Positions 8,445-49,557 of a stretch of DNA of 64,000 bases are shown here, in pieces; position 1 is the stretch's first letter, and every line of letters begins with the position of its first letter. Made by a program: the position numbers and the translations under genes. The stretch is from sequence record LR745208.1; one strand, 5' to 3'. The notes beneath the pieces are model-generated. The model ran no database searches. It was not told the DNA's origin and saw only the letters and a list, made by a program, of their open reading frames with translations.

Positions 8445-9791
8445 CTAGAGCATCGAGGCAGCGAGGTCTGCCAAGGGGCTACGGACCCCCTCAGGCAAAA
8501 ATACGGCTCCAGCGATGTGGGAGGTTCTGGTCACTGTGGCAGCATGAACCAATCCGTTGCTAAGGGCATCCAGGAAGGGGTCATCAATCTGAGATGGGTC
8601 CCCACACAACACCACCTTTGTACCCGTAGCCGCCCTCGAAACGATAGTCCGGACTTCATGGGGCGATGTGTTCTGAACCTCGTCGAAGATCATGAATGCT
8701 TTGGGGATAGACCTGCCCCTAATTGAGTGCATGGGCTGGATCTCTACCTGCCCAGCATGGAGCAACTGCTCCCAGTTTTTCTCTTGGATCCCCTTCTTCT
8801 GGTTTTCCTTTTTGTCTGTGGTCAAGAGCTGGTCCAAGTTGTCGTAGAAGGACATCATCCAAGGGGCCATCTTTTCCTCCTCATTGCCTGGGAGGTAGCC
8901 AAGGTCTCGGCCCATTGGCACCACGGGCTTGGAGAGGATGATTTTGTCGTATGCCTTGTCTAACTGGTGTAGGGCCACCATAAGTGAAAGGAGGGTTTTC
9001 CCGCTGCCACTAGGTCCCATCAGCACGACCAATTGAACCTTGGGGTCCAAAAGAAGGTCCAAAGCCATTTGCTGCCCCTCGTTCTTAGCATCAAACTTCA
9101 TCTTGGGGACCCTGGTGGAGATTGGCTTGAGGGACGCCTTCCCCATTCGGAAGAGCTGGGATTCCCCATCAGGTGCCGTGAATTGTACAAATTCATTAGG
9201 GGCTACACCCGTCAGATCTACAACATCCTCTGTCCAAGGGGGCATCTCCGCCTTAGTGCCATAGAGGGTCTGGAGGTTGTCCAGGCTCGCGATGGGTAGG
9301 GTATGCTTCCCAGTTGGGATCTCTCCCGGATGCACTCGGTCTTCTCGGTAATCCTCAGTCTTGAGGCCCCTGGCATCCGCTAGGATCCTCAGGTTCACGT
9401 CCTTGGTGACCAGGACCACAGTCAGGTGCTTGAACCGTTCTTGCGCCTTCAGAGCGGAGCCAAGAATGAGCATGTCCATCTTCCGGGACAGGGATGTATT
9501 CTGAAGCTCCTCGAAGTGCTCGTCCTGACCTATGATGAAAAAGTGGCTGTTGGTTCTGGAGTCCAGAACCCCCCCTGGATCCTGAAGGCTCCCCTGCTCA
9601 ACAATCTCTGCAATGTGTCGGCTAGCAGTTCGAGCGGCTGAAGCCACATCGTGACGCTGGCTAATCTTCAAGTCATCCAACTCCATGACAACGAAAAGTG
9701 GAATTGCCACCGAGGACTTCCTGTAACTGTAGAGAGACTCGGGATCATGGACTAGGACAGAAGTGTCGAGCACAAACAGTTGATTTTCCAC
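8445..9791 (-). CDS. phoH: PIN-PhoH (PhoH2-like) protein: N-terminal PIN domain plus PhoH ATPase
   Basis: N-terminal FVLDTSVLVHDP (PIN), LVTKDVNLRI, Walker A GPSGSGKT, LGYLPG, RGRSI, Walker B IFDEVQN, GDPSQID. Confidence 0.92.
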   Translation of the reverse strand: MENQLFVLDTSVLVHDPESLYSYRKSSVAIPLFVVMELDDLKISQRHDVASAARTASRHIAEIVEQGSLQDPGGVLDSRTNSHFFIIGQDEHFEELQNTSLSRKMDMLILGSALKAQERFKHLTVVLVTKDVNLRILADARGLKTEDYREDRVHPGEIPTGKHTLPIASLDNLQTLYGTKAEMPPWTEDVVDLTGVAPNEFVQFTAPDGESQLFRMGKASLKPISTRVPKMKFDAKNEGQQMALDLLLDPKVQLVVLMGPSGSGKTLLSLMVALHQLDKAYDKIILSKPVVPMGRDLGYLPGNEEEKMAPWMMSFYDNLDQLLTTDKKENQKKGIQEKNWEQLLHAGQVEIQPMHSIRGRSIPKAFMIFDEVQNTSPHEVRTIVSRAATGTKVVLCGDPSQIDDPFLDALSNGLVHAATVTRTSHIAGAVFLPEGVRSPLADLAASML

Positions 9792-20635: not shown

Positions 20636-21526
20636 CTAACCGAGGGCACACCAATCCTCTTCTCCATTCGGAGCATCGTCCAAAAGGACCGGGAAGCTGG
20701 GGTTGGGGCCCGTGACCCTTGGACGAGACATGTCGAAATCCCCATTGGATAGGCGGGGGTAGAACACCTCGTCAATCATCGAAACTATTGTTGCGACATT
20801 ATGGCTCAAAGCGTGCTGGTCAGGCACCCAAATCAGCCCCGGAACCGACCCCCCCACCGCTTGGGGTAGAGTCTCTTCCATTTCTTGCTTGAGCTGTTCC
20901 CTAAGGTCCATAAGTTTGAGAATTCTCGCTTCTCCGTCATTTCTCAGGGTTTTTATTTCCTTGGACACCCAAACCCTGGTGGCGTTGATGGTCCTAGACA
21001 TCTCCGCTGCCTCTGCGGCATAGCTGGTTGTGTTCCCAAATCGCCTTGGCGGGTACCGGAGCAAATTAAGCCATCCTCCAGTATAAGTCCCACCTGCCGA
21101 AGGGTCTGCCGTCTGTGAGGAAGCAATGCCCCCATAGGGCTGTGTCTCGACTACCTGTGTGGGGGAGGTTTCCCCATTCTCAGGGTCCCCCGGTGGGGCA
21201 TCAGGGGCATCGACGATTTGGACTGAGTCGGGCTGCAAAAATAGAGAAATGTCGAACAAGTTCCCACCCATAGCCACATATGCCTGACACAGTTTCTCCA
21301 AACTGGTATTCGGCGACACATCGATACCAATTCGACGTTCACTCATTGGTGAGGTTGGATTGTTGGGGTCACGTCGGGCGTACAAAACCCTTACCAGACC
21401 GATCCTATGTAACTCTGCGGAAATAGTGGTGATCCGAGCCAGGACATCGCGTCTTTGGTTCAAAATAAATGCCCGAAAATCCCGGTAGGCACCCTGACGA
21501 AAATAGCCACCTACTGAAAAGCTCAT
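20636..21526 (-). CDS. Hypothetical protein, 296 aa (possibly virion-associated)
   Basis: Clean ORF co-oriented with the structural operon; ATGA overlap with the GIY-YIG gene. Confidence 0.6.
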   Translation of the reverse strand: MSFSVGGYFRQGAYRDFRAFILNQRRDVLARITTISAELHRIGLVRVLYARRDPNNPTSPMSERRIGIDVSPNTSLEKLCQAYVAMGGNLFDISLFLQPDSVQIVDAPDAPPGDPENGETSPTQVVETQPYGGIASSQTADPSAGGTYTGGWLNLLRYPPRRFGNTTSYAAEAAEMSRTINATRVWVSKEIKTLRNDGEARILKLMDLREQLKQEMEETLPQAVGGSVPGLIWVPDQHALSHNVATIVSMIDEVFYPRLSNGDFDMSRPRVTGPNPSFPVLLDDAPNGEEDWCALG

Positions 21527-22461
21527 TGGCCCCCCTCCTCTTTCTGGGTCCTTAGAGCCGCCCGTGCCTCCCTAGCCTTCCTTCGACCTTCCTTCATTTT
21601 TGCCCTGGCTTCCGGACCACGCTTCTTACCCAAGTGGGATTGCCGAACCTTTTCAATGTGCTCAGGGGTATGCACGCTACCTGAATGGGTCTGTCGAAGT
21701 ATTTCTATATGCTCCGGGGTCAGTTTTTTTCCTTGCTGCGCTGTACTAGCGGCTTCTCGCATTTCAGGAGTCCAAACTCTTTCTCGATTCGAGCGTCTTG
21801 TTCCCTCTAGTTCCTGAGGGGTCTTTTGACGATTATGGTGGGCAATAGCGGCTGCGGCATGTGCCTGAGGGGAGGGGTTGACCCCCTTCTTAGCAGCACT
21901 CATCTTCGCCCGTGTCTCAAGGGATCTCACAGACCCTAGATTCGCAGTGCTAATCTTTGCTTTCTCCTCCTCCGTCATTGCCCGTCCCGTACCTATAACT
22001 CCAGCCTTCAGGATGTTTGCAATGTGCTCGGGGGTAAGTCTTTTTCCAGTGTGAGAGGCACTCATTTTTGCCTTACTTTCTGGAGCATGCTTACCTCTGG
22101 ACCCGCCTTCAGTCAGATTATAGCCCCGAGGTGCTCGACACTCCAGGGTCTTAATTAGGTTGATTTCCAAATCATTCAAAGCGTCCTGGTTTTGCGCCTG
22201 AGCCACAGTCTCAATTGCAAAATTCCCCACGCCATACTTCCGAATTGCTTTGCTCAACAGGTGCCCACGTCCTGCCAGAGCCTCACTCTGATGGTCGTAC
22301 CACCTGTTTGCTACCCCCATGGTTGTCTGCCCAACATAGATTTTCCCATTCACTATACAAGTCACCTTGTAGATCTCCCCATAAGGTTTTGCATTCCCGG
22401 CAGCATCCTCCCTAAGCCCCAGAAGCCCCTCAACGCCCCCTTCCTCCTTGGCCCCACTCAT
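21523..22461 (-). CDS. Free-standing GIY-YIG homing endonuclease with NUMOD3-type repeats
   Basis: GEIYKVTCIVNGKIYVGQT; repeated H-x-PE-x-x-x-K-MS-x-x-x-x-G units in the C-terminal half. Confidence 0.9.
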   Translation of the reverse strand: MSGAKEEGGVEGLLGLREDAAGNAKPYGEIYKVTCIVNGKIYVGQTTMGVANRWYDHQSEALAGRGHLLSKAIRKYGVGNFAIETVAQAQNQDALNDLEINLIKTLECRAPRGYNLTEGGSRGKHAPESKAKMSASHTGKRLTPEHIANILKAGVIGTGRAMTEEEKAKISTANLGSVRSLETRAKMSAAKKGVNPSPQAHAAAAIAHHNRQKTPQELEGTRRSNRERVWTPEMREAASTAQQGKKLTPEHIEILRQTHSGSVHTPEHIEKVRQSHLGKKRGPEARAKMKEGRRKAREARAALRTQKEEGGQ

Positions 22462-27707: not shown

Positions 27708-28265
27708 TCAGTAGGAAAGGAATGTCCGGGTCTTCCCATAGGGGCCCTTCTCGGTCCCAATATTGGCTCCCTTGGTCTTCCGGAGGAAATCCCAGGCTGC
27801 CTGGGCCTCTTTGGACTGGAGTCCAGAGGCATAGAGTTTCATGCCCTTCTGGGACAGGTAATGAGCCCCATAGTCGTAGAGGGCGGTCGCCACCCCCCGG
27901 CGTTGGTACTCATCACCTACCCGAATGAAGTCCACTATAGGCTTATCGACCATGAATGCCTTGAAAGCCTTGAATCCCCTGCCATATTTCTCCACAAGAG
28001 GGGCCTCAAGATCCTTCCTCAGAGATTTCAACTCCGTGACGGACAGGTCATCGATCTTGGGGTCCTCAGGGCCCGTCAGGCCAACACCACCAGCCCCGGG
28101 GTAACGATCATGGTAGTCCAATAGAGCCCTGACACGGGTCCTCAAGTCGCTCAAGTCTTTGTATTTACTGTATTTGGTGAAGGCACCAATCCCATTGATC
28201 TCCCCGAGATATTCCAGGATGCTGGGATAGTACCTCTTGAACCTCTCGACTGGGATGTAACTCAT
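27708..28265 (-). CDS. GNAT acetyltransferase domain; C-terminal part of the gene split by the 127-bp duplication
   Basis: VDFIRVGDEYQRRGVATALY (GNAT motif A); its first 14 aa are identical to residues near the end of the 560-aa ORF. Confidence 0.75.
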   Translation of the reverse strand: MSYIPVERFKRYYPSILEYLGEINGIGAFTKYSKYKDLSDLRTRVRALLDYHDRYPGAGGVGLTGPEDPKIDDLSVTELKSLRKDLEAPLVEKYGRGFKAFKAFMVDKPIVDFIRVGDEYQRRGVATALYDYGAHYLSQKGMKLYASGLQSKEAQAAWDFLRKTKGANIGTEKGPYGKTRTFLSY

Positions 28266-28480
28266 ATTGAGGTATCCGACGGGCTTGCCTCCCAGGAATG
28301 CCTCAACCTTATCTACCTGCCATCCACGGTTGTTATCCCCCTCATTGTCTGGGATAGTACCTCTTGAACCTCTCGACTGGGATGTAACTCATATTGAGGT
28401 ATCCGACGGGCTTGCCTCCCAGGAATGCCTCAACCTTATCTACCTGCCATCCACGGTTGTTATCCCCCTCATTGTCTGGG
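28222..28480. repeat. Exact 127-bp tandem duplication (2 x 127 + 5 bp CTGGG)
   Basis: CTGGGATAGTACCTC...CTCATTGT starts at 28222 and 28349; CTGGG recurs at 28476. Confidence 0.97.
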
Positions 28481-30837: not shown

Positions 30838-31248
30838 CTACATAACAGTGACGTAACAGGCCCTAGGAGCTTCCTTACTCCCTACAGGGGCAGGCACAGC
30901 ATAGAAATCCACGGTGGCCCCTCTCATCGGAATGCTCTTGGAAACCACCTCAGATTTGTGCAGGTAGAAGGTCTTACCCCCCTTGGTACGGATGAACCCA
31001 TATCCCTTAACGGGATCGTAATTGGTCACCAGCCCTGTGAACTTAGCGGGAACTGTCAGACGGGTCACCGAGAGGGCCTTATTAGAGTCCGGCTCCTTCT
31101 CGAAAGACACTGGCTCCCCTGTAATGGGAGGAGCCCCCTCTTGGCTATCGAAAGCCGAGAAGTGGAAGAAGACATCCTCCCCCCCATCCCCGGGGACCAC
31201 AAACCCGTAATTCTTCTCGGCCAGATATCGTCTAATGGACCCTATCAC
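30838..31248 (-). CDS. Tandem cold-shock domain protein (two CSDs)
   Basis: KNYGFV...EDVFFHFSAF and KGYGFI...TFYLHKSEV (RNP1/RNP2 twice); GTG 31248 with SD GGAGG at 5 nt (track start 31260). Confidence 0.9.
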   Translation of the reverse strand: MIGSIRRYLAEKNYGFVVPGDGGEDVFFHFSAFDSQEGAPPITGEPVSFEKEPDSNKALSVTRLTVPAKFTGLVTNYDPVKGYGFIRTKGGKTFYLHKSEVVSKSIPMRGATVDFYAVPAPVGSKEAPRACYVTVM

Positions 31249-32423
31249 CATACCCTCCAAACATTATAGCTCCGAAACACCAGATCTTCCGGTTTGGCAT
31301 TCCGATAAACCCGGACCCCTGTTTTTAGTGTCTGTAGGGTGATTAGACCTTTGTTACTAACCCCTCCAACGTAAGTCAGGCCATATTTGGGATGGGACAC
31401 CAAAGAACCCCGCTTAAACCCAGAACTCCTCGTCCCCCCATAAGGTTTCCTGATTCCCCCGACGGCAGGAACCATCACATGCAACTGCCTACGATGGAAC
31501 CTAATAGGAGAGATACACAACATATTGGTGTTCTCAGGGAGGGTATGCCCACCAACTAGCCAATTGGCTAGGACCCAGCTATCCACACAATGAGCTGCAA
31601 ATACCTCAGACAACTTGGCTTTGCTCTTCTTCAATCCAACGGCATCTCGAAGAGCCTTGGTTTCCCATCCCTGCTTGAGATGCACCTTCCCAAATTGCTC
31701 AAGTTCCTTGTAGAACCACGTCTTTCCAATCTCCAAAGGGGAGAAACTCTTGTTCCACTTCCGGACCCCTTTGACGGTTCGTGCCTTGATGTCCTCCACA
31801 ACCAGATCAGTAATGGGGAACATCTTGGCCAATTGAGCCACAATTCTTATCTTCCACTGCCATCTAGCTTTGGTGCTTGGAGCTAAGCTCCCACGTTGCT
31901 TCCGATTCATCCTGGATGCTCGATAGGGGGTCTTCCTGGATCGCCGGGTTCTCCTCATCATCCGTCGGGTTTCCACTGCATCCTTGACATGCTGGACGGC
32001 ATCGGCTTGAATATTGAGGAAGGTGTGGGCCTTTGACTTAACTGTGAACCCTTCCTTCTTGGACCCAGGATCAATCCCTACTGCTATTGGTTGTTTCTCC
32101 TGGGCGGAGGGCTCCCGATTGAGGCGGACACAGAAGATCCCCCGCTTGAAGAACGGGGTGGCTTCCTTGTTCTTGATCCAACGTCGAGCCCTACTTGGGG
32201 TTGTTGGCATCAAGGGTTTTTGATTGCTATCTACGACTGGAACTACCTGATAAGGCCCTCTTTCGAGGGTGTGTACACCACTTCGACGCTGATCTACCGA
32301 GGGAAGCAAGGCTAGTGGGGCACCCTGCATGTCGCTCGCCCTGCCACGGGCAGTAGATTCAGCCGATGGCACGGCGCCATCCTGTCTAGTCAACCGTTTT
32401 CTCCTGTTGGTCTGCGTTAGCAT
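31245..32423 (-). CDS. isrB: IsrB (IS200/IS605 OMEGA RNA-guided nickase; PLMP + split RuvC + bridge helix, no HNH)
   Basis: KPLMPT, RuvC-I VGIDPG, bridge helix RRMMRRTRRSR, RuvC-II VVEDIK, RuvC-III HCVDSW; no room for an HNH domain; conserved core starts near codon 60 (32246); true start uncertain. Confidence 0.88.
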   Translation of the reverse strand: MLTQTNRRKRLTRQDGAVPSAESTARGRASDMQGAPLALLPSVDQRRSGVHTLERGPYQVVPVVDSNQKPLMPTTPSRARRWIKNKEATPFFKRGIFCVRLNREPSAQEKQPIAVGIDPGSKKEGFTVKSKAHTFLNIQADAVQHVKDAVETRRMMRRTRRSRKTPYRASRMNRKQRGSLAPSTKARWQWKIRIVAQLAKMFPITDLVVEDIKARTVKGVRKWNKSFSPLEIGKTWFYKELEQFGKVHLKQGWETKALRDAVGLKKSKAKLSEVFAAHCVDSWVLANWLVGGHTLPENTNMLCISPIRFHRRQLHVMVPAVGGIRKPYGGTRSSGFKRGSLVSHPKYGLTYVGGVSNKGLITLQTLKTGVRVYRNAKPEDLVFRSYNVWRVW

Positions 32424-32473
32424 CGCTTTCCTTTAGGCCCCATCACCCTCTGTTAAGGGAGAAGGGTAGTTAC
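32256..32473 (-). ncRNA. Putative omega-RNA scaffold of IsrB
   Basis: 5' GTAACTACCC..CCCT-TAACAG-AGGG..GGGGC; GTTGACTAG (32386-32394); hairpin GATGGC/GCCATC; GCAGGG-TGCCCCACTAG-CCTTGC; CCACT/AGTGG complement; terminal CCCTC-GAAA-GAGGG. Confidence 0.75.
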
Positions 32474-32884
32474 TGGGGCTGTATTGCCAACTGCACCAGC
32501 GGCACCTTGTAGGAGCACCTTGAGCATCGTTTGACCGATTGCCACCAAAGCGTCTACAATCTGTTGAAGAATCACGTGAACCTGATCCTTCGTATCTGCC
32601 TCATGCTGCTGGAGGACTGCCAATAGGTCACTGGCCTCCCTGAGAGTAAGCTTGCTCTCAAACAGGGAGATGTCGATCTTTCCCTTAATGAGATCAGCAA
32701 TCAGGCCCTTCAGGTAGCCAATCGCCTCATGGCCCTCACGAGATGCGAAGTTGATTGTGATGTCCACCAGGGACTTCTCCCAATCCTTCTTAGCATTGTC
32801 CCTAACCGCCTGAAGCTGAGCCAGTGCCACTGGAAGGGCCTGAGTCTCCAGGAGGTTGAGGATGGTGTCTTGAATGGATGGCAT
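32453..32884 (-). CDS. Hypothetical helical protein, 143 aa; last six codons overlap the omega-RNA 5' end
   Basis: Clean ORF; terminal VTTLLP* is encoded by GTAACTACCCTTCTCCCTTAA. Confidence 0.65.
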   Translation of the reverse strand: MPSIQDTILNLLETQALPVALAQLQAVRDNAKKDWEKSLVDITINFASREGHEAIGYLKGLIADLIKGKIDISLFESKLTLREASDLLAVLQQHEADTKDQVHVILQQIVDALVAIGQTMLKVLLQGAAGAVGNTAPVTTLLP

Positions 32885-32887
32885 GGC

Positions 32888-33259
32888 TTAGTTGCCCCCG
32901 GGGTCGGCTGGCAGGTCACATGTCTGAGCTGGGATAGCTGGTGCCGCCCCGGGGTTCGTGTTCGTCAGCGAACCATTGTAACGCATCATAGCGTTGTGCC
33001 ATGGCCAGCGAGCGGCGTACATCAGCCACCACTCCACTCGATCATTACAGACCGTGCTGGGGCTAGCCGAAGAGCCAGCTGCCGTGGTCCAATGGCCATC
33101 AGCACACGTGCATTCAGTGGCGATTGCGTGGCGAACCTCAGGTGCACTCAGGTGCACCACCCGGTTGGCAAAAGCAATTTCTGCCTGATACACCGAGCTA
33201 TTGCGCAGGGTGACACAAGATGAGAGGACGAGGGTGAGAACGATTGCGAGATTTTTCAC
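32888..33259 (-). CDS. Putative lipoprotein, Cys-rich
   Basis: MKNLAIVLTLVLSS-C: charged N-terminus, hydrophobic core and lipobox LSSC. Confidence 0.65.
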   Translation of the reverse strand: MKNLAIVLTLVLSSCVTLRNSSVYQAEIAFANRVVHLSAPEVRHAIATECTCADGHWTTAAGSSASPSTVCNDRVEWWLMYAARWPWHNAMMRYNGSLTNTNPGAAPAIPAQTCDLPADPGGN

Positions 33260-33663: not shown

Positions 33664-33948
33664 ATGAGTGATCTTGAGAAGAATCCAGCACTAGAGCAGG
33701 AGCAAGAGGAGGATGTAGTCCTTGAGGAAGGGGACTTTGCTGTCGTCTTCAAAAGTGACGGAGACATCAAGATTATGGTGACAGAGGGGGAAACTGAAGA
33801 GAAGGATCAAGACCAACTAGAGAAGGCCGTGGGTCTGGCCGAATACATCCGGTTCGTCCTGGACAGTGAAGAGTGCCTGGAACTGTTCAAGCAGCACAAT
33901 AAGGAATATGAGGCTGCTCCCGGGTCAGGCAGCAACGTCCTCAATTAG
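33664..33948 (+). CDS. Small acidic hypothetical protein, 94 aa
   Basis: MSDLEKNPALEQEQEEDVVLEEGDFAVVF; start refined from track 33520. Confidence 0.6.
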   Translation: MSDLEKNPALEQEQEEDVVLEEGDFAVVFKSDGDIKIMVTEGETEEKDQDQLEKAVGLAEYIRFVLDSEECLELFKQHNKEYEAAPGSGSNVLN

Positions 33949-35492
33949 AACAGGTCGAGGATGGACCCGCCAATCAGTTCCTCCGCATCGGGTCCCTTGG
34001 GAGCCTTGGGTGGTTTGACGGCTGGCTTGTTGTAGTTCTCAATACGTTCCTTAGCGATCCCGAAGTACTCCTCCTCCTTCTCAATCCCAATGAATTGGAA
34101 GCCTGCTTGTAGTGCCGCCACACCCGTGGTGCCACTGCCCAGAAAAGGGTCCAAGACAGTTCCCCCCGGCTGTGTGACCAAAGAAGTAAGCCAAATCATT
34201 AGGCTTTTTGGTTTTACGGTGGGGTGATTGTTCCCCTCCCCACGGTCACTCCTGGATGCCTTGGCCACATACCGGAACACCGCAAAATCCTCAGGCTCCC
34301 AGGATGTCACAGGGAAGAACCGGCTGGCCCCCCCGGAGTCTCCTTCGCTGGGGGCCTCATCCCGTAGCTCAAACTTCCCAAAGGCATTCTTCGTCTTGGG
34401 TTCATTACGATGCCCGGACTTAGATCCACTGGTCAAAGTGCCACTCTGCCTATCCATCTCTGCAACCGGGCATCCCTCCACGCAGTCCCACTTCTCTATC
34501 TCTTCGGTCCCATCTGGTCCTATGTAATTGAAACGGGCCCTAGTCCTCTCCCCAGCCACCTCATGGAAGCCAGAATGGTTCCCCGCAATGACCCCAGGAT
34601 CCTTATGGGGTGCCACCCCACCACCGCCATCTCTCACCTTCCTTGTACCCACGCATTGACAATCAGCGGAGTGAGTCATTACCCAATTGGTTGGCCATCT
34701 CCCATTGGGCAAATTGGCGTCATATGTCTGGTTCCTATCCAACCTCTTATCCAGCCCATAGATGCCATTCACCCCACTGCTATCCCTATGCAGGGCCACG
34801 GTTCCCGTGGCCCTTGGCTGACCAGCAATCCTACAGGCATCAATGTTCAGTGCCCCCGTTCCTGTCTTGAGGACCTGAGCGGCTATGGTGAGTTCTCTTA
34901 GGGGCTTGCGAGCCATGACTATTGGTTCATGTCCAGGCTTGAGGCTGCTATTCCATCCATCCCATTGCTTGGCCTCGGGAGTAGAGGGCTCATCCCTCTT
35001 CTCTGAGGGACCTTCATCCTCAGCCCCGACATATCCCCTATGGCCATTCAAAGTTGAGGGACGAGTATCAGCCTCCCCAGGTCGAGTTTCGTTCACTTCC
35101 CGAAGAGCAATACTATCCGACCGCCCCTGTTGAAGGTAGCCGTCAATGGCCTTGCTGACATCAATTCCCTTCGGCCATCCTGACCCAAAAGTCCAATGAA
35201 TTGAGTCCCTTATGGAAAATCCAGCGCCCTCTATGGCACAGGTCATACGGTGATAAGTTCTAGTGGCACCGAAGGCCAACAAATAACCCCCAGGCTTCAG
35301 GACCCGCAACACCTCGGCCCAGAACTTAGGGTCAGCTGCAATGTTGCCCTTGTCAGTGTCCCATTTTGACCCCATGAACGAAATGAGATACGGAGGGTCA
35401 GTCACAACAGAGTCCACGGAGTCATCCGGAAGGGTCTTGAGGACTTCCAGGCAATCCCCCAACTCAAGCCTGCATCGTTCATTCACGTTCAT
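33945..35492 (-). CDS. Orphan DNA N6-adenine/N4-cytosine methyltransferase (beta-class motif order) with large insertion
   Basis: LGDCLEVL, VTDPPY, HPTVKP, VLDPFLGSGTTG; start refined to ATG 35492. Confidence 0.92.
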   Translation of the reverse strand: MNVNERCRLELGDCLEVLKTLPDDSVDSVVTDPPYLISFMGSKWDTDKGNIAADPKFWAEVLRVLKPGGYLLAFGATRTYHRMTCAIEGAGFSIRDSIHWTFGSGWPKGIDVSKAIDGYLQQGRSDSIALREVNETRPGEADTRPSTLNGHRGYVGAEDEGPSEKRDEPSTPEAKQWDGWNSSLKPGHEPIVMARKPLRELTIAAQVLKTGTGALNIDACRIAGQPRATGTVALHRDSSGVNGIYGLDKRLDRNQTYDANLPNGRWPTNWVMTHSADCQCVGTRKVRDGGGGVAPHKDPGVIAGNHSGFHEVAGERTRARFNYIGPDGTEEIEKWDCVEGCPVAEMDRQSGTLTSGSKSGHRNEPKTKNAFGKFELRDEAPSEGDSGGASRFFPVTSWEPEDFAVFRYVAKASRSDRGEGNNHPTVKPKSLMIWLTSLVTQPGGTVLDPFLGSGTTGVAALQAGFQFIGIEKEEEYFGIAKERIENYNKPAVKPPKAPKGPDAEELIGGSILDLF

Positions 35493-35493
35493 G

Positions 35494-36156
35494 TCACTGA
35501 CCCATCTTGATTTTGGCTCCCACAGGAACCTTGTTTTCCACCACAACAGGTGCCCATGGGTCTACCGCCACAAGGGCACCCCTGGCCGCCCCTACAGGAG
35601 ACGGGGGTGGTGAACCATCCAGCATTACACCTTCATCAGGGAAGGCGGTATTGGCCACCCTTGTCTCCGCCGACAAGGGCTTGACTACAGGCTTGAGGAC
35701 CCGCTCCGGCTCTGGGGCTGCTGGGGGCAAACGTTCCTTGACAGGCTTTGCTGGTTTAGCTGGCTTCCCCCTGGCCTCATTGAGCTTCGAAACAGCATCC
35801 TCCACCACCTGTGAGGTATTGGTGCTCTGATCTGGGCTTGCCAGATGGACCCCAGGAGCATCCCATGAGTCAGACCCGGGAGACCTGATTGACAAGGCCT
35901 CTGCGGCGACTTCAAGGAAGTGCATGGCCCGAAAGGGATCAAACTGATGATCCTCAGGGCTGGCAAACTGGGGATTGATGATTAGACGGTCTTTTTGCGT
36001 AGAAATTCTCTCTTGGAAATTTGAGCCTTGCCAGCCCGCATTGACACAAGTGGGGTTCCGACACCGCTTGCAGAATGTCTGCTTGAAGTCATTTGGGGGG
36101 ACGTGCTGGTCGTTACATTCGGACAGCAGGTCCAGTTTACGCTTTGGATCTGGCAT
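35494..36156 (-). CDS. Hypothetical protein with N-terminal Cys cluster and Pro-rich tail
   Basis: C...FCKRCRNPTC; TGATG coupling at 36156. Confidence 0.6.
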   Translation of the reverse strand: MPDPKRKLDLLSECNDQHVPPNDFKQTFCKRCRNPTCVNAGWQGSNFQERISTQKDRLIINPQFASPEDHQFDPFRAMHFLEVAAEALSIRSPGSDSWDAPGVHLASPDQSTNTSQVVEDAVSKLNEARGKPAKPAKPVKERLPPAAPEPERVLKPVVKPLSAETRVANTAFPDEGVMLDGSPPPSPVGAARGALVAVDPWAPVVVENKVPVGAKIKMGQ

Positions 36157-43387: not shown

Positions 43388-44194
43388 TCAGGCAAACATA
43401 TCCAGCACAGAAGGCTCCTGCTGTGGAACCACTGCAACCATTTCCAAAATGGAAACACCTGCTTCTGTCATCCTGGCTTTCCGAGCCTCATGAGCATCGG
43501 CGAAGGTATCCGGATCGTCCAGGTGGGGCTCCCGCATGGGCATAATGACAGCTGTTACCACCCCCTTATAGAGCAGAGCCACAGGTTGGAAAATCTCCGG
43601 GGCACACATGATTGTATCCCACTCCACCAGGGTAACAGCCAGGGCCAGCTTACGAGCATCAACGTAATGCAAAACGTCTTGGGCATCCACGATGAGGGCC
43701 ACCCCAGCCACTGTGGCCCCCAGGAACTCCGCTGGCTTGGCCATTTCTGGTATTACCAACACGTCAGATGCGTCCAGAAACACCACCCTATCTGGCTCCG
43801 GCTCCTGTAGCTCCCTCAGAAGAGCTTCTGCCCCAGGACGGACATGGCGAATATCAAATCCCATATGGCGGTCACACAGGTAGGAAGAGTTGGCCTCTGT
43901 GGCTCGATATCCCCATGCCTTAACGGTTCCCACCTGAAGAGGTTTTAGTATGGGTTTGGCAAAGATGGGATACCCCTCGTTATTGAACCCAGTCCACCGT
44001 GCCAGCAGGTCGGCCGCAATGTCCTTGGCCCACTTGAGACCATCGACCTTGTCAGCGTAGGGCTCCCACCCATGGTTGTGCTCGTAAACCACCTTGTAAC
44101 CATCTGGTTCCTTGGCAACCAGCAAGACCTTCTCTGGGGATCCCTCCAGGGATAGGCGGTATTGCGTCTTAGCCGTATTGACGATCTCAATCAT
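43388..44194 (-). CDS. Hypothetical protein, about 268 aa
   Basis: Start refined to ATG 44194; contains AVIMPMR near the C-terminus. Confidence 0.6.
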   Translation of the reverse strand: MIEIVNTAKTQYRLSLEGSPEKVLLVAKEPDGYKVVYEHNHGWEPYADKVDGLKWAKDIAADLLARWTGFNNEGYPIFAKPILKPLQVGTVKAWGYRATEANSSYLCDRHMGFDIRHVRPGAEALLRELQEPEPDRVVFLDASDVLVIPEMAKPAEFLGATVAGVALIVDAQDVLHYVDARKLALAVTLVEWDTIMCAPEIFQPVALLYKGVVTAVIMPMREPHLDDPDTFADAHEARKARMTEAGVSILEMVAVVPQQEPSVLDMFA

Positions 44195-45818
44195 TGGTGG
44201 CCCCAAACATCCCCAATATGGAATCCTCTTCGGGAGCCTCTTCCACAGGTGGCTTTACACCAGCAATGCGCAGTCGAGCCGTGTTGGCAGACTCTTCCTC
44301 TAACTCAATTCCCGTGAACTCAAATCCCTCATGGACACATGCCATTCCAGTTGTTCCCGACCCACAGAAGGGGTCCAGAACCTTGCCCCCTGGTTGGGTG
44401 ACCAGTTTGACCAAAAATCTCATTAAGTTCAAGGGCTTGACGGTGACATGTTTGTTAGCGGCCCCCTCAGGCATCCCCGCATTGCGCTCCCCCTTGGATG
44501 TCTTGGCCACATACCGGAAGGCATGCTCGATCTCCCCGGGCTCCCATGTGAAGTTGGGGAAGAACCGAGAGGCCCCTCCCGAGTCCCCATAAACCTCACC
44601 CCCACCACCCACTCCCTTGAACATCCCAGGTTTCTTCACCTCACTTGGATTTGCCCTACCCCCTGTCCCAAACGAGTAGGCAGCCCGACCTGTCCCAAAC
44701 GAGTAGGCAGCCCGACCAAGCTGTGCCTGATTGCTCTGCCTATCCATCTCTGCGATGGGGCACCCTTCAGCACACTCAAAAGCGGGAACCTCATCCTTGC
44801 CATCTTCGGTTGCAAAAACCGCCCCGGTGCCCTTCTCGTAGGTACAGCCCCCCTCTTCTACCCCCCACTTCACAGTCCTTCTACCCGCGGTGAGTTGCTT
44901 GGCCTTGACCGTGTTAGTACCGACCTGCTTACAGGATGGGAGATGACAGAGCAGGGTGTTTGGAGGCCACCTGCCAGCAGGATTGCCTGGAGACACCATG
45001 AGTGGGGGCTTCCACCCATCGTCATTCATCCTCCCCAAGGCATGCTGGCCATGGTTACCAGTCAGGTCATCTGGAGTGCCCACCCTACAAGCATCCACAT
45101 TGATGGCCCCGGTACCGGTCGCCAGCACCTGTGCGGCCACTGTGGACTCCCTAAGTGGCCTGCGGAATACTAGAATCACTTCATGTGAGGGCTTTAGTGC
45201 CGTCCCCCAACCGTCCCATTTTTTGGCGGCATCGGTAGCGGGTGCTGTTTCAGTACGGGTATCCTCAACCTCTCTGTGCAGGTCCCCTGGGGACATAGCC
45301 CGAGGATGGGTATTGGCCCTTGCAGCATACTGAGAGAGGCCAACCACTTCTCTCTCGGCCCCGGCCTGCTTGTCAATGGCCTTGCTGACATTGAGGCTTT
45401 TTGGAAATCCCGACCCAAAAGTCCAATGCAATGCAGGAACCCCAATAGGTACTACTACTGACCCATGCACAGCGATTGTGTCCCTGCTCTCAAATCCCGC
45501 AAACCTGATTGCAATGCTGAGTAGGTCCCACGTTCGTGAGGACGACATGGCAAGTAGGTGCCCCCCAGGCTTCAGAACCCGGAACACCTCACGCCAATAC
45601 TCCGGTCCAGGCACTGAGGCATCCCAGTCTTTGGACATGAAGCCAGCCCTCCCATGCTTGTAGGGCTTGCCTGCTATCCAACAAGCCATCACTTCCGCAA
45701 TGTCCGGCTCGACTGACAACCCATACGGGGGATCAGTCACGATGGCGTCGAAGGACTCCGCCTCCAGGGTGGGGAGAACCTGTAAGGAGTCTCCCCGAAT
45801 CACAATGTGGTTGGTCAT
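44187..45818 (-). CDS. Second orphan DNA N6/N4 methyltransferase, paralogue of 33945..35492
   Basis: RGDSLQVL, VTDPPY, HVTVKP, VLDPFCGSGTTG; shared HWTFGSGxPK and CxEGCP insert. Confidence 0.92.
   Translation of the reverse strand: MTNHIVIRGDSLQVLPTLEAESFDAIVTDPPYGLSVEPDIAEVMACWIAGKPYKHGRAGFMSKDWDASVPGPEYWREVFRVLKPGGHLLAMSSSRTWDLLSIAIRFAGFESRDTIAVHGSVVVPIGVPALHWTFGSGFPKSLNVSKAIDKQAGAEREVVGLSQYAARANTHPRAMSPGDLHREVEDTRTETAPATDAAKKWDGWGTALKPSHEVILVFRRPLRESTVAAQVLATGTGAINVDACRVGTPDDLTGNHGQHALGRMNDDGWKPPLMVSPGNPAGRWPPNTLLCHLPSCKQVGTNTVKAKQLTAGRRTVKWGVEEGGCTYEKGTGAVFATEDGKDEVPAFECAEGCPIAEMDRQSNQAQLGRAAYSFGTGRAAYSFGTGGRANPSEVKKPGMFKGVGGGGEVYGDSGGASRFFPNFTWEPGEIEHAFRYVAKTSKGERNAGMPEGAANKHVTVKPLNLMRFLVKLVTQPGGKVLDPFCGSGTTGMACVHEGFEFTGIELEEESANTARLRIAGVKPPVEEAPEEDSILGMFGATND
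44662..44717. repeat. Exact 27-bp in-frame tandem duplication (GRAAYSFGT x2)
   Basis: CCTGTCCCAAACGAGTAGGCAGCCCGA at 44662 and 44689. Confidence 0.95.
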
Positions 45819-48667
45819 GTAAACAGGTCTCCAACGTCGTCTAGTGCATTCTGTGACCTGTCATTGTCCCTCTTCGGGACCATCATGGGTACCTCGTGGG
45901 TGGTCAGGATCCTTCTACATGACCACTCCACCTGTGCGAAGAAGTTCTTGAAAGGTGCTTGGTCACGGCTCTTGAGACACTGGAACAGAACACGGTTCTG
46001 ATTTCGTAGAGTCTCGTCCAAATAGGTGGCCGTCACGATGTCAGAACTCCTCTCCGCCTCGTTGCAATAACTGAGGAAAGTGAGGTTATACGGCCCTATT
46101 GTATAGGTATTATCCGATTTCTCTACAGCCTTCTCTGCTGCCTTGAACCCCTCACGGGAAATCTGAAACAGGTTGACCACAGCCATTCCTGCCCCCCGAT
46201 TGAAGTTCATGGCCAGTCTCTTGAGGTCCCGCAAAATCTCGTTGAGTCTCTCGGTCGTGGACGGAACCCATTTACGTGGAGCCAGCAAACCTGCGTGGTC
46301 AACGATCAGTAAACTGAAGGGAGACTTGGAGTAAATGACTTCTGCCCTAGATCGTAGATCCGCCACATTAAAGTCGCTCTTGTCCGGGTCTGACACCTCA
46401 ATGTGTATTTTGCCATAGAGCCCGGAATTGAAGTCCGGGATCACGTAGTCCAGCAAGAAGGTCTTTTCTTCCGGTGTGAGTTGACCATCTCGGACCCTGC
46501 CATAGTCCAGGCTCACGGAAGGACCCGGGTCCTTCTGGATACCAAGTTGGATCCTGGCTTCCCTGAACTTGCCATGCATAGAGTGTATCGCGTAGAGGAT
46601 TCGGCGGCACTGGATGTAGGGCATTTCCAGAGAGAAAATTAGGGAGTCATGTTTTAGGTAGACTGCTTGGTTGTATGCCCAGTTCATGGCAAAGCTACTG
46701 TTGTGGGTGATGAACCCATTTGCCACGAAATTGGCATGCCCAGGAACCGACATATCATAGGTCATTTCCATCCCATCCAATGTGGAATATCTAACCCTCT
46801 CCCAACTCACATTCCCCTCCATCATACGAGTGAGTTGCTCATCCCCTACAACCTCAGCGAACTTCCTCACATAATTCCTGGAGACCCAGGCCCCTTTCTT
46901 TGCCCTCCTGACGGATCGCCAAAACCCTGTTGGGGTCTTGAATCTTGTGAGATCGGGAATGTCAGCAAGAAAAGACGCTGGGATCCTATCCCCATCATAT
47001 TTGATAAGAGCAGTTTGGTTCCACTTCTCTGCTTTTCTCCTAGTGGGCTCTTTGCCCTTTGGGGAAATCTTGGACAAGAACAGCCCCATACCTTGTCGCG
47101 ATGTAACTAGAAGGGACCAGAAGTCATAGGGCTCCCCATTACAGGTTACTGAAACCTTACTCACGGTAGAGGGAACCCCAACCCGCTGTAGGAGAGCCTG
47201 AAGATCTACCACCAATTGATAGCTTGTGCTGCCATATGAGAAGACGGATTTCCCCTTCCTTTTTCCCCTTGACTTCTCCATTCCGATTCGGCCATCCGTC
47301 GCCCACAGGGCGGACAATAGGACCCACACCTGATCATCGGATATAGCCCACAAATCACCCGGGATGTGTTTGTCCCGAGCCCCTGCTCCCCACAGCCCCA
47401 GATTCTCTAGAAGCAATCGAACAGGGGACGGAGTGTACCCCTTACGGTCAGGAGATCTGGATACCCGGATCACATCCGTGTGCTTCCTGCCATCCGACTT
47501 ACAGACCCTCTTATCCACCGTCCTAAAAACAGGGGGGTCCTGAAGCTGTTTCCTACGAGTTCCTTTTGCTTCCTTAATCCCCATCTCCTTCAAGCACCTG
47601 ACACTGCTATTCGTAAGCGTGAGATCCTCGATAATACCCCCATCCCCTATCAAGTATCCAAGAACTGCAACCTCCTCATCGGTGAAAGGACTTTTCACTC
47701 TGGCCCCAACCCTAAGGTCTCTGGGCACGGCTACCCAATCTCCAGAGGAAAGATCCTCCGCATTTACCCACCCAGTTGGAGTTCGGAAGGGGTGATTTCC
47801 AGATACACGAATGCTTCGGCCAGTCTCGCTCTCAATCTTCAGGATTGGCCTGACCCCACTTTCTGCCACATGAGAAACTTGTGCTGTAGTCATTTTCCAT
47901 TTGGTTTCATCTAGGGTATGAACTGTGGGCAGGTCCCCCGTGTCAAAGATTTCTTTGACCGTACGAAGTTTTCCGGTTGTCACATCGAAAAGCCTTGTCC
48001 CCCCCGTAACGCACTTGAGCCCTCCCGTCCAAGCGGCATGCGTCCACAGCTCAAACTTCTTAGCCCCGCTGAGAGTAGTATCTATCTGCTCGATCCCCGT
48101 ATGCTGCCCAAATCCTGCTAGAGGGTCGTTCTCAATTCGATCATACTCTCGTTTGAAGTCCTCCCCATCCAAAGTGATCTCCCCAGAGAGACGCTGCCCA
48201 GTTGCGGGCATCACAATATCATGGGACTTGGTGATCAAAAACCGGATGGCATCAATGGGCCCGCGAATGAGTTTCTTCTGTTTGCCCTCTTTGATCTCCA
48301 TCCCCGTCGAGACAATCTGCCCTGCCTCCCGGAGTAATTCCTGGACAAGACGTGTCCTTCGTTCCTCTGCCCTCTCTTCCACCCTATGGAGGAAGTCCCC
48401 CTTGTACAGGGGCTTGAGGGTGAGGAGGATCTCAATCCGGTCTACGGGCTCCGGCTGATGTAGCTGCTCAAAATGGGCACGTAGAGTCCGAACGTCAGGC
48501 ACATGATTGTGAGTTCGGGCAAAGTTCTGAATGACCTCCCAAATGGTGTTGTCCTCAGGGACATCAAACCCCAGCGAGGCATCCCCCAGGGCGAGGTAGT
48601 TGCGAAAGGCAAGTTCCTGGTCATCCGAGGTAGACCCAATGAATGATGATCGTAGGAGAATCTTCAC
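45815..48667 (-). CDS. dnaB: DnaB-like replicative helicase with intein
   Basis: HTGIEQID, Walker A AWTGGLK|S, FSLEM, LLIVDH, LKRLA, FQISREG, EAERSSDIV. Confidence 0.88.
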   Translation of the reverse strand: MKILLRSSFIGSTSDDQELAFRNYLALGDASLGFDVPEDNTIWEVIQNFARTHNHVPDVRTLRAHFEQLHQPEPVDRIEILLTLKPLYKGDFLHRVEERAEERRTRLVQELLREAGQIVSTGMEIKEGKQKKLIRGPIDAIRFLITKSHDIVMPATGQRLSGEITLDGEDFKREYDRIENDPLAGFGQHTGIEQIDTTLSGAKKFELWTHAAWTGGLKCVTGGTRLFDVTTGKLRTVKEIFDTGDLPTVHTLDETKWKMTTAQVSHVAESGVRPILKIESETGRSIRVSGNHPFRTPTGWVNAEDLSSGDWVAVPRDLRVGARVKSPFTDEEVAVLGYLIGDGGIIEDLTLTNSSVRCLKEMGIKEAKGTRRKQLQDPPVFRTVDKRVCKSDGRKHTDVIRVSRSPDRKGYTPSPVRLLLENLGLWGAGARDKHIPGDLWAISDDQVWVLLSALWATDGRIGMEKSRGKRKGKSVFSYGSTSYQLVVDLQALLQRVGVPSTVSKVSVTCNGEPYDFWSLLVTSRQGMGLFLSKISPKGKEPTRRKAEKWNQTALIKYDGDRIPASFLADIPDLTRFKTPTGFWRSVRRAKKGAWVSRNYVRKFAEVVGDEQLTRMMEGNVSWERVRYSTLDGMEMTYDMSVPGHANFVANGFITHNSSFAMNWAYNQAVYLKHDSLIFSLEMPYIQCRRILYAIHSMHGKFREARIQLGIQKDPGPSVSLDYGRVRDGQLTPEEKTFLLDYVIPDFNSGLYGKIHIEVSDPDKSDFNVADLRSRAEVIYSKSPFSLLIVDHAGLLAPRKWVPSTTERLNEILRDLKRLAMNFNRGAGMAVVNLFQISREGFKAAEKAVEKSDNTYTIGPYNLTFLSYCNEAERSSDIVTATYLDETLRNQNRVLFQCLKSRDQAPFKNFFAQVEWSCRRILTTHEVPMMVPKRDNDRSQNALDDVGDLFT
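46700..48013 (-). mobile_element. Intein in the DnaB Walker A (438 aa, LAGLIDADG)
   Basis: K|CVTGGT ... FITHN|S; LGYLIGDG and LSALWATDG blocks. Confidence 0.92.
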
Positions 48668-49557
48668 CGGTCACCACCCCTATTCTTTTTCTTGTCAGCC
48701 TTCTTCTTGTCCTCCCAAGGATCCTTAGGGGGTCTCCCCACCACTCTGGTTGTACCTGTAGATTGAGTCATGATGCCCGTGGATAGACTGAGCACAACAG
48801 GAGGGGTGGGTGCGGAGGGCTCTCCCTCATCAGGGGCATCTTCTTTAGGAGCAAATCCCATCTCCACAAGGCCGATGGTTCCTGGGTCAGCCTCCTTCAC
48901 GGAGGATGGCCGTCTCTCGTCCAAGGCTACATTTTCCCACCCAGCCATGAAGGTCAGGGCGGCATCTGAGAAGGCTATATGGTTGACATCGAACCTGTGA
49001 TCAGGCTGGTCCACCACCCAAGTTGGCTTTTGAACGTGCCTACGATGCTGAAGAGCCTCCAGGAACACCTCCCACATTGCCCTGTTGCGGGCCGACTTAA
49101 CACCCAATTGGATAACTAACAATTGGGGTGGATCCACAAGGTCCACAAGGGTCGCCTTTTCGGTGGATGCACTCATGGCATCCGGGTCGAAGATCTCTTG
49201 ACCTGAGACGGCCACATTGGCCAGCCATGCCGTTATGAGATCAGAGTCAGATACCACCTTGAACCCCCATCTATACTGGCGCATGACATGAATGCCAACC
49301 AGCCTCAAATGAGACCTGAGGGTGGCTGCTGATGCCGTGATGAAAACATCCTGATCCCACAAATCCAGAAGGGGGGACTCAGTGATCTTGGCGGCCTGCA
49401 CGATTCCCTTCCAGGCCTTTTCCAACCGGTCACTGATGTCCTTAGCCAACAAGCAGGAGCAAGCCCGGGTCATCGGGATCCCCATATGCGTCTTCTCGTC
49501 ATCCACGAAGCCCGTTCCAAAGCACTTCTGGCAAACCTTGGGTTTTTCGTCACTCAT
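48664..49557 (-). CDS. DnaC-like (degenerate AAA+) protein with N-terminal Zn finger
   Basis: CQKCFGTG...RACSC then PQLLVIQLG; directly upstream of DnaB; no canonical Walker A. Confidence 0.55.
   Translation of the reverse strand: MSDEKPKVCQKCFGTGFVDDEKTHMGIPMTRACSCLLAKDISDRLEKAWKGIVQAAKITESPLLDLWDQDVFITASAATLRSHLRLVGIHVMRQYRWGFKVVSDSDLITAWLANVAVSGQEIFDPDAMSASTEKATLVDLVDPPQLLVIQLGVKSARNRAMWEVFLEALQHRRHVQKPTWVVDQPDHRFDVNHIAFSDAALTFMAGWENVALDERRPSSVKEADPGTIGLVEMGFAPKEDAPDEGEPSAPTPPVVLSLSTGIMTQSTGTTRVVGRPPKDPWEDKKKADKKKNRGGDR

Follow-up and report, generated by a model that had tools for sequence, protein, structure and literature searches.

An IsrB–ωRNA element with one end lost in the genome of a huge uncultured phage

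The best described relative of the locus reported here is DtIsrB of Desulfovirgula thermocuniculi (PDB 8DMB; Hirano et al. 2022, PMC9581776), a protein with a cognate omega RNA (ωRNA) and a target-adjacent motif (TAM) of NTGA, in which R323 reads the G and Q326 reads the A. A Q326R mutant also accepts TTGG and ATGG, and the SL1 hairpin of the ωRNA is dispensable for nicking and is thought to serve transposition (PMC9581776). Active orthologues include CwIsrB, DsIsrB and K2IsrB, with cyanobacterial and viral-metagenome representatives among them, and DNA nicking has been demonstrated for an IsrB of viral-metagenome origin (PMC9581776). An IsrB element has also entered cyanophage Mic1 at an ATGA, together with 207 bp upstream and 59 bp downstream (PMC11237433). 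Both IsrB–ωRNA systems and IsrB elements in phage genomes are already known, and we describe here a further locus, on the minus strand of a 64-kb stretch of DNA that we refer to as the window. The window is free of N and identical in sequence to positions 248001-312000 of LR745208.1, an unannotated entry of 485,034 bp with the record name 'uncultured phage', in keeping with the initial annotation of the locus as phage-encoded. The explanation that we favor, and which we think is probably correct, is that an IS200/IS605-superfamily IsrB element of the ISC1 type came into this huge phage and has become fixed at its present site, with an intact isrB and cognate ωRNA and with one end lost. What distinguishes the locus is this one-ended state, the pairing of R374 with an ATGG flank, and an N-terminal extension encoded by the ωRNA DNA.

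The IsrB protein and its ωRNA

The isrB open reading frame (ORF) occupies 31245..32423 on the minus strand and encodes 392 residues, exactly as initially located, and the outer limit proposed for the locus, 32473, is the start of the ωRNA. The conserved IsrB core begins at residue 60 (32246). Pfam RRXRR (PF14239) matches residues 61-213 (E=5.3e-40), and in a search of all PDB sequences the best match is 8DMB, the DtIsrB structure, over residues 60-364 (E=3.8e-41); with a family profile the match to 8DMB improves to E=1.9e-50 and now reaches the C-terminal domain. The AlphaFold (AF2) model has a mean predicted local distance difference test score of 70, with the core mostly at 80–95 and residues 1-57 below 50, and a Foldseek search with this model returns 8dmb_P at the top (E=6.5e-24, TM 0.60), followed by IscB structures; the predicted fold also matches RuvC structures. 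IscB chains in the PDB align to residues 60-179 only, the N-terminal third. The proposed IsrB architecture is thus upheld by the RRXRR match and by 8DMB being the best match by sequence, profile and fold, and the hidden Markov model and structure comparisons support a grouping with IsrB rather than IscB.

The individual motifs are preserved in an alignment (A1) of 26 family members, the window protein and 25 relatives. The PLMP motif (residues 70-73, 32205..32216) aligns to the PLMP strand of DtIsrB, with M72 and P73 invariant and P70 nearly so. The split RuvC domain (31581..32072) contributes D118 in GIDPGS (32072-32070), E210 in VVED (31796-31794), and H278 (31592-31590) and D281 (31583-31581) in HCVD, all of them invariant in the 26 members. 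After RuvC I comes the Arg-rich bridge helix (residues 145-166, 31991-31926), in which the Arg-rich stretch RRMMRRTRRSRK (residues 153-164) lies within a predicted helix of residues 145-164 and is mostly invariant. A Pfam search at E<=1 gave no HNH family match in the window protein, E210 and H278 are spaced 67 residues apart with a short linker at the site where IscB has its HNH domain, and the alignment to DtIsrB is continuous, without insertion. Lacking an HNH domain, the protein is predicted to be a nickase and not a double-strand cutter. Each of these protein features had been named in the initial annotation, and all are correct as judged by the sequence, the A1 alignment and the E<=1 search. 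The other 25 members are invariant at 91 positions, and the window protein departs from them at one of these (S362T); counts of such departures for other members are zero to four.

The DNA upstream of isrB in family copies is unique to each copy up to a sharp border, beyond which it is conserved from G-TCA(C/A)nnACC onwards. RNAalifold applied to 51 copies predicted 32 base pairs, 28 of them with compensatory changes, and a larger alignment (A3) of 88 sequences, from which the window copy was excluded, yields a structure composed of S1, SL1, SL2, S2, S3, SL5, S4, SL4 and SL7 together with two pseudoknots, an adaptor between the SL2 and SL5 loops and a nexus that joins the SL4 loop to the strand preceding SL7. 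The structure comprises 60 pairs in 13 helices, and 89.8% of the 5,147 cells hold standard pairs, compared to 70.5% in shuffles (none of 500 reaching the observed value) and 35-44% when the partners are slid; compensatory change on both sides is seen at 50 of the 60 pairs. The initial annotation had proposed an ωRNA in the roughly 220 nt upstream that covariance models should recognize. Existing models do not do so, in that Rfam, including the HEARO model (RF02033), has no match, and a search of 31000-33200 at E<=10 gave only a chance match to a small nucleolar RNA. We therefore built a family-specific covariance model (R1) from 26 relatives, again excluding the window copy, with 216 positions and 50 pairs. 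R1 has a single match on either strand of the 64 kb, at 32238..32473 on the minus strand, and this is full length (132.6 bits, E=2.3e-36), so that the ωRNA itself is well supported. Scores of relatives that were not used to build R1 lie at 90-206 bits (median near 150), and those of the nearest relatives at 143-196. Weak second R1 matches lie away from any isrB at two other family loci (L133, 2427-2627, 34 bits; L014, 8281-8450, 30 bits), and these may be degenerate or stand-alone ωRNA copies.

From the R1 match and the family covariation the window's ωRNA scaffold is placed at 32256..32473 on the minus strand, a length of about 218 nt, and every family helix is kept. Reading 5' to 3', the 5' strand of S1 (32473-32469) is followed by SL1, the proximal hairpin (32467-32438), SL2 (32426-32414, with the loop GCUA at 32421-32418), the 3' strand of S1 (32394-32389), the 5' strand of S2 (GAC at 32386-32384, within UAGAC at 32388-32384), a variable hairpin (32382-32365), the 5' strand of S3 (32363-32353), SL5 (32352-32338), SL4 (32331-32304, containing CCACU at 32318-32314), the 3' strands of S3 (32297-32288) and S2 (32287-32285), the AGUGG that pairs with CCACU in the nexus pseudoknot (32282-32278), and SL7 with its GAAA loop (32269-32256). 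Most of the pairings first suggested for this RNA correspond to family helices: that of the 5' GU(C)AAC with GUUGAC is S1, where alignment columns 5 and 124 covary (CG 45, AU 30); the CCCU/AGGG hairpin is SL1; CCACU/AGUGG is the nexus pseudoknot, with 99% of cells paired and compensatory change in four of its five pairs; and the GAAA-tetraloop hairpin is SL7. The suggested complementarity of GACUAG to the CUAG loop does not hold: by covariation, CUAG contributes its CU to the nexus pseudoknot, UUGAC its GAC to S1 and UAGAC its GAC to S2.

Compensatory double changes separate the window copy from its nearest relative, which is about 72% identical, at two pairs in S3 and two in SL2. The nexus pseudoknot reads CCACU/AGUGG in the window and CCUCU/AGAGG in that relative, and the stem sequence of SL7 differs between them with pairing retained. 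The compensatory double changes argue that the RNA structure has been under selection in this lineage, and on sequence evidence we conclude that IsrB and its cognate ωRNA, which lies upstream on the same strand, are structurally intact.

The start of translation is a peculiarity of the window and its close relatives. Of 139 relatives, 108 have an ATG no more than eight codons away from the conserved core, and the frame upstream of it closes after a median of six codons. In the window and its subclade this canonical ATG is absent and the frame runs on without a stop through 59-85 codons of the ωRNA, with a substitute ATG about 59-61 codons upstream of the core, which in the window is 32423, within the SL2 loop. 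Residues 1-59 are thus an N-terminal extension encoded by ωRNA scaffold DNA and predicted to be disordered. With an open frame running through the scaffold and no canonical ATG, it is most likely that the scaffold DNA of this subclade also codes for protein, although M32 (32330) and the TTG codon at L39 are candidate starts downstream of M1. The pattern was noted in the window (32246-32423) and in its nearest relatives L004, L006, L007, L092 and L094.

Ends of the element, guide and TAM

The family has the distribution of a mobile element. More than 5,600 homologues were found in a large protein database, and 499 matching stretches among GTDB contigs (one genome per species), most of these in filamentous cyanobacteria such as Nostoc, Microcoleus and Scytonema and often in several copies per genome. 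The nearest relatives, 70-73% identical over the IsrB core, are found in uncultured viral contigs and in metagenome-assembled genomes of Parcubacteria and Armatimonadetes, and their flanks are unrelated to those of the window, as expected of a mobile element. Multiple copies and varied contexts thus characterize the family; in the LR745208.1 phage there is a single copy.

One boundary of this copy is sharp, and at the other a segment is missing. Conserved sequence begins sharply at 32473. At the distal side, the relatives continue beyond their last conserved codons (TGG AGG) with an SL1-like hairpin, CTCCCCnnnnTGAAGnnnnGGGGTTTCC, then 12-21 nt, and then ATGA, and this distal hairpin is carried by all of them. 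The ATGA fits both the published NTGA TAM and the ATGA site at which an IsrB element of host origin inserted into Mic1. The similarity of the window to its relatives ends after TGGAGG (31254), so that the truncation junction lies at 31252..31254 and the relatives' 55-60 or so extra nucleotides, consisting of the hairpin and the 12-21 nt, are absent. Neither a comparison of the downstream sequence with the relatives nor R1, which gave no second partial match, revealed a distal subterminal hairpin in the window. Of the two subterminal hairpins typical of IS200/IS605 elements, the window retains only the proximal SL1, in altered form, and with the distal transposon end missing the element is probably immobile.

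The truncated end abuts phage coding sequence. With only GT between, it is adjoined by an ATGG (31248..31251, minus strand), a putative TAM that is also the start of the downstream phage gene, which encodes a protein with two cold-shock domains (CSD; 30838..31251, minus strand; Pfam CSD E=5.6e-16, two stretches). Gene callers start this gene at either the ATG (31251) or the GTG (31248), and the isrB stop codon (31247-31245) overlaps it.

The identity of this flank agrees with the protein. The predicted TAM-reading residues R371 and R374 (31302..31313) were aligned by profile to R323 and Q326 of DtIsrB (8DMB), with R371 at the R323 position and R374 (31304-31302) at that of Gln326. Among family loci, those with Gln at the latter position have an ATGA flank by 76 to 6, and those with Arg or Lys have ATGG by 10 to 1; the association of residue and flank base is strong (Fisher p=1e-8) in a test that ignores relatedness among loci. 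The window's ATGG agrees with its Arg374, and with Arg at the Gln326 position and ATGG at the element border we predict a TAM of NTGG or a relaxed NTGR. In this link between the residue and the fourth flank base, natural variation parallels the published Q326R experiment. Position relative to genes seems not to be random either: in counts made downstream of isrB at family loci L004-L171, the ATG of the flanking ATGA opens an ORF of at least 60 residues at 56 of 81 loci, compared to 25% for other ATGA sequences at the same loci, indicating that family elements tend to sit exactly on start codons, apparently those of host genes.

At the opposite end, what precedes the conserved GTCA start on its 5' side is specific to the copy in every relative. 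A putative guide of 20 nt, a length borrowed from DtIsrB (PMC9581776), would here be CAGTTGGCAATACAGCCCCA (32474..32493, minus strand), phage DNA that adjoins the scaffold and forms the last codons of a 143-residue ORF. The predicted guide is simply flanking phage DNA. It occurs once in the window, and no further match was found in the other 424 kb of LR745208.1 at <=4 mismatches. The ORF itself (32453..32884, minus strand) runs into the element, with its final six codons and TAA stop (32455-32453) inside SL1 of the ωRNA, the stop falling in the SL1 loop. No terminator lies between this upstream gene and the ωRNA, and a scan for promoters and terminators gave no more than chance. The relatives of the 143-residue ORF are remote only, namely standalone proteins of about 120 residues that end near query residue 128. 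We considered that the ORF and the CSD gene were a single ancestral gene split by the element, and did not adopt this on account of these standalone relatives. Two giant proteins contain the domain of this ORF 7 and 22 times. Between the ωRNA and the CSD gene there are two short inverted matches at about chance level, and a 15-nt stretch of the CSD-gene mRNA (31071-31085) is complementary at 14 of 15 positions to the 3' side of SL7 and the bases beyond (32247-32261), which by a rough count is also about what chance would give.

Population record and competing explanations

The LR745208.1 phage carries one isrB and one ωRNA, with no second DNA copy of the locus and no extra stand-alone ωRNA in the remaining 424 kb. 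Three IMG/VR contigs contain an identical copy of the locus, isrB is intact in eight other contigs from several samples, and the insertion is present in every further metagenome contig that could be checked by looking up exact matches to the proteins of the flanking genes. When the upstream ORF and a neighbouring 560-residue protein were used to scan IMG/VR, the same phage only was found, and a scan of IMG/VR with 15-mers of the guide gave chance matches, the full guide occurring only in the same phage. A variant of the locus was also recovered. A 2.1-kb contig, Ga0208375_1033428 (locus L241, Joint Genome Institute sample 3300025121), is 100% identical to the window save for an 82-bp deletion in isrB at about 31411-31492, which causes a frameshift after ...SPIRFHR and loss of the TAM-interacting domain, and thus constitutes a natural null allele.

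These features suggest how the element might behave. With the distal hairpin lost, a TnpA transposase could probably no longer move it. Transcription of the upstream phage gene would read through into the ωRNA, as suggested by the lack of a terminator between them and by all neighbouring genes being on the same strand, and the 5' 20 nt of this RNA, CAGTTGGCAATACAGCCCCA, would act as the guide. The complex of IsrB and scaffold would then be expected to nick the non-target strand of DNA that matches the guide and is followed by a TAM, predicted to be NTGG or a relaxed NTGR. The phage itself should be spared from self-targeting, because its own copy of the guide precedes the scaffold (GTAA...) and not a TAM. 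The sole natural target would be an uninterrupted allele of the same phage locus, for example in a co-infecting relative, and a nick there could favor recombinational copying of the element into it.

Several observations weigh against an intact and functional element. The window's R1 score lies 10-60 bits under those of its nearest relatives. The near-invariant C of the 5' GUCA is deleted, leaving a bulged G in S1 beside the guide; SL1 is enlarged, with U·U mismatches in it; a pair of the adaptor pseudoknot that is G-C in 86 of 88 relatives is G·U in the window copy; and isrB lacks the canonical start codon. The association behind the predicted TAM comes from a test in which related loci are counted as independent. 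The original target site is ambiguous, since a junction of the guide with ATGG would fuse the 143-residue upstream ORF in frame with the CSD ORF, whereas the relatives of the upstream ORF stand alone. No uninterrupted, empty-site allele was seen in any collection scanned, which leaves the homing target hypothetical, and the natural frameshift deletion indicates that isrB is dispensable to the phage.

The main rival to a fixed element with its parts intact is that the locus is a decaying relic, a stranded IsrB element that forms no active ribonucleoprotein and is drifting toward loss, and although we regard this as unlikely it accounts for much of the foregoing. The missing transposon end, the distorted SL1 and deleted S1 base, the absent canonical ATG, an R1 score in the lower third of the family, and a population variant without the TAM-interacting domain are all what decay would produce. 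However, the ORF is complete with all catalytic residues kept, and its one change among 91 invariant positions is like those of other members. All of the RNA helices have been kept through compensatory double substitutions since the split from the nearest relative, SL1 is a hairpin that DtIsrB can nick without (PMC9581776), the long open frame through the ωRNA is common to the whole subclade that lacks the canonical ATG, and the gene is intact in the eight other contigs. For these reasons we favor an element that is fixed and one-ended with its nickase and RNA intact over one that is being lost.

A further alternative is that the transposition-dead IsrB–ωRNA has been domesticated, and is kept by the phage as a fixed RNA-guided homing or exclusion nickase directed at the uninterrupted allele (the guide followed by ATGG at the CSD start) in co-infecting relatives. 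Although probably immobile, the element is conserved and is intact in most contigs, the guide is phage DNA, and the predicted TAM agrees with the flank. Co-infection and homing also seem relevant to this phage, as the window is rich in homing elements, with an intein containing a LAGLIDADG endonuclease inside a DnaB-like helicase (45815-48667), a LAGLIDADG insert inside an SNF2 helicase (49554-52547), and a free-standing GIY-YIG/NUMOD3 endonuclease (21523-22461), all on the minus strand. If the locus were such a nickase, the element and its neighbouring genes would be preferentially inherited, and the locus would achieve by RNA guidance what the Seg and Mob endonucleases do in T-even phages. 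Against this, no relative with an uninterrupted allele was found, IsrB makes a nick only, a null allele exists in nature, and there are no extra ωRNAs with other guides in the 485-kb genome. The guide also equals the flank in every mobile copy, and hence is no mark of domestication. A homing or exclusion role, akin to the homing or phage competition first suggested for the locus, is therefore unlikely, and we place it slightly below decay in likelihood. Finally, that the locus encodes a double-strand nuclease like IscB or Cas9, or that its upstream conservation is purely protein-coding without an RNA, is very improbable, for although the called ORF spans most of the conserved upstream region, homologues align there at the protein level and Rfam gives no match, HNH is absent, IscB structures align to the N-terminal third only, and the 108 of 139 relatives that translate from just before the core nonetheless conserve the upstream sequence with base-pair covariation, which together with the R1 match and the open-frame analysis refutes it.

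Genomic setting and comparison with known systems

The genes that flank the isrB locus are nearly all on the minus strand, and the same long block includes genes for a PIN-PhoH fusion protein (8445-9791) and two N6/N4 DNA methyltransferases (33945-35546 and 44187-45818). No CRISPR-like array and no direct repeat was found near isrB. Elsewhere in the window, a perfect tandem duplication of 127 bp (2.0 copies, 100% identical) occupies 28222-28480, where two ORFs adjoin, and could be either genuine or an assembly artefact.

The locus confirms that huge phages carry complete OMEGA (IsrB–ωRNA) systems, and as an example it is clearly delimited, a guide and a variant TAM can be predicted for it, and a null allele of it occurs in nature. 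The by-products of the family-wide comparison may be of greater value than the locus itself, in particular the link between TAM residue and flank base, the landing on start codons, and the subclade with a scaffold-encoded extension. As the editing-tool candidate that it was first taken for it is unremarkable, its roughly 390 residues being comparable to characterised IsrBs.

The closest comparison is with DtIsrB. The domain order is the same in the two proteins, with PLMP, RuvC I, bridge helix, RuvC II, short linker, RuvC III and TAM-interacting domain, at about 29% identity in the structural alignment, and the ωRNAs have in common the core of S1-S4, SL1, SL2, SL4, SL5 and SL7 and both the adaptor and nexus pseudoknots (PMC9581776). 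R371 occupies the position of the Arg with which DtIsrB reads the TAM G. The window scaffold is shorter, about 218 nt compared to 262 nt, and SL6 and SL8 were not found in it; its expected TAM, given the Arg in place of Gln326, is NTGG or NTGR and not NTGA; and of the two proteins only that of the window has a 59-residue ωRNA-encoded extension, its start codon not being located after SL7. The cyanobacterial elements that dominate the family we searched have the same ωRNA plan and NTG(A) flank as the active IsrBs. Judged by origin, the nearest relatives of the window locus are not cyanobacterial.

Among phages, RRXRR/IsrB genes are present in the Microcystis phage Mic1 insertion (PMC11237433), as gp171 of Ma-LMM01 and as gp73 of Bacillus phage AgentSmith. 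The Mic1 insert came with its 59 bp of downstream sequence and lies at ATGA, whereas the copy described here, in a 485-kb uncultured phage, has lost its distal end and is flanked by ATGG. In AgentSmith an ωRNA match of 108 bits lies just upstream of the RRXRR gene, and in Ma-LMM01 there is a weak one; AgentSmith keeps the distal-end hairpin, seen as a second partial R1 match after the gene, and in this it too differs from the window copy.

More distant systems share some of these features. IscB (OgeuIscB, PDB 7XHT and 7UTN) has PLMP, RuvC I and the bridge helix in common with the window protein, and likewise has an upstream ωRNA with a 5' guide, but it contains an HNH domain that the window protein lacks. 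HEARO RNA (RF02033) is represented by a model that does not match the window RNA at E<=10. The free-standing homing endonucleases Seg and Mob of T-even phages, and the homing of OMEGA transposons (reviewed in PMC13565253), resemble the locus as selfish nuclease genes that sit between phage genes and whose only plausible target is the allele without them. Seg and Mob, however, find their target by protein and make a break, whereas the element described here is predicted to be directed by an RNA guide and a TAM, and to make a nick.

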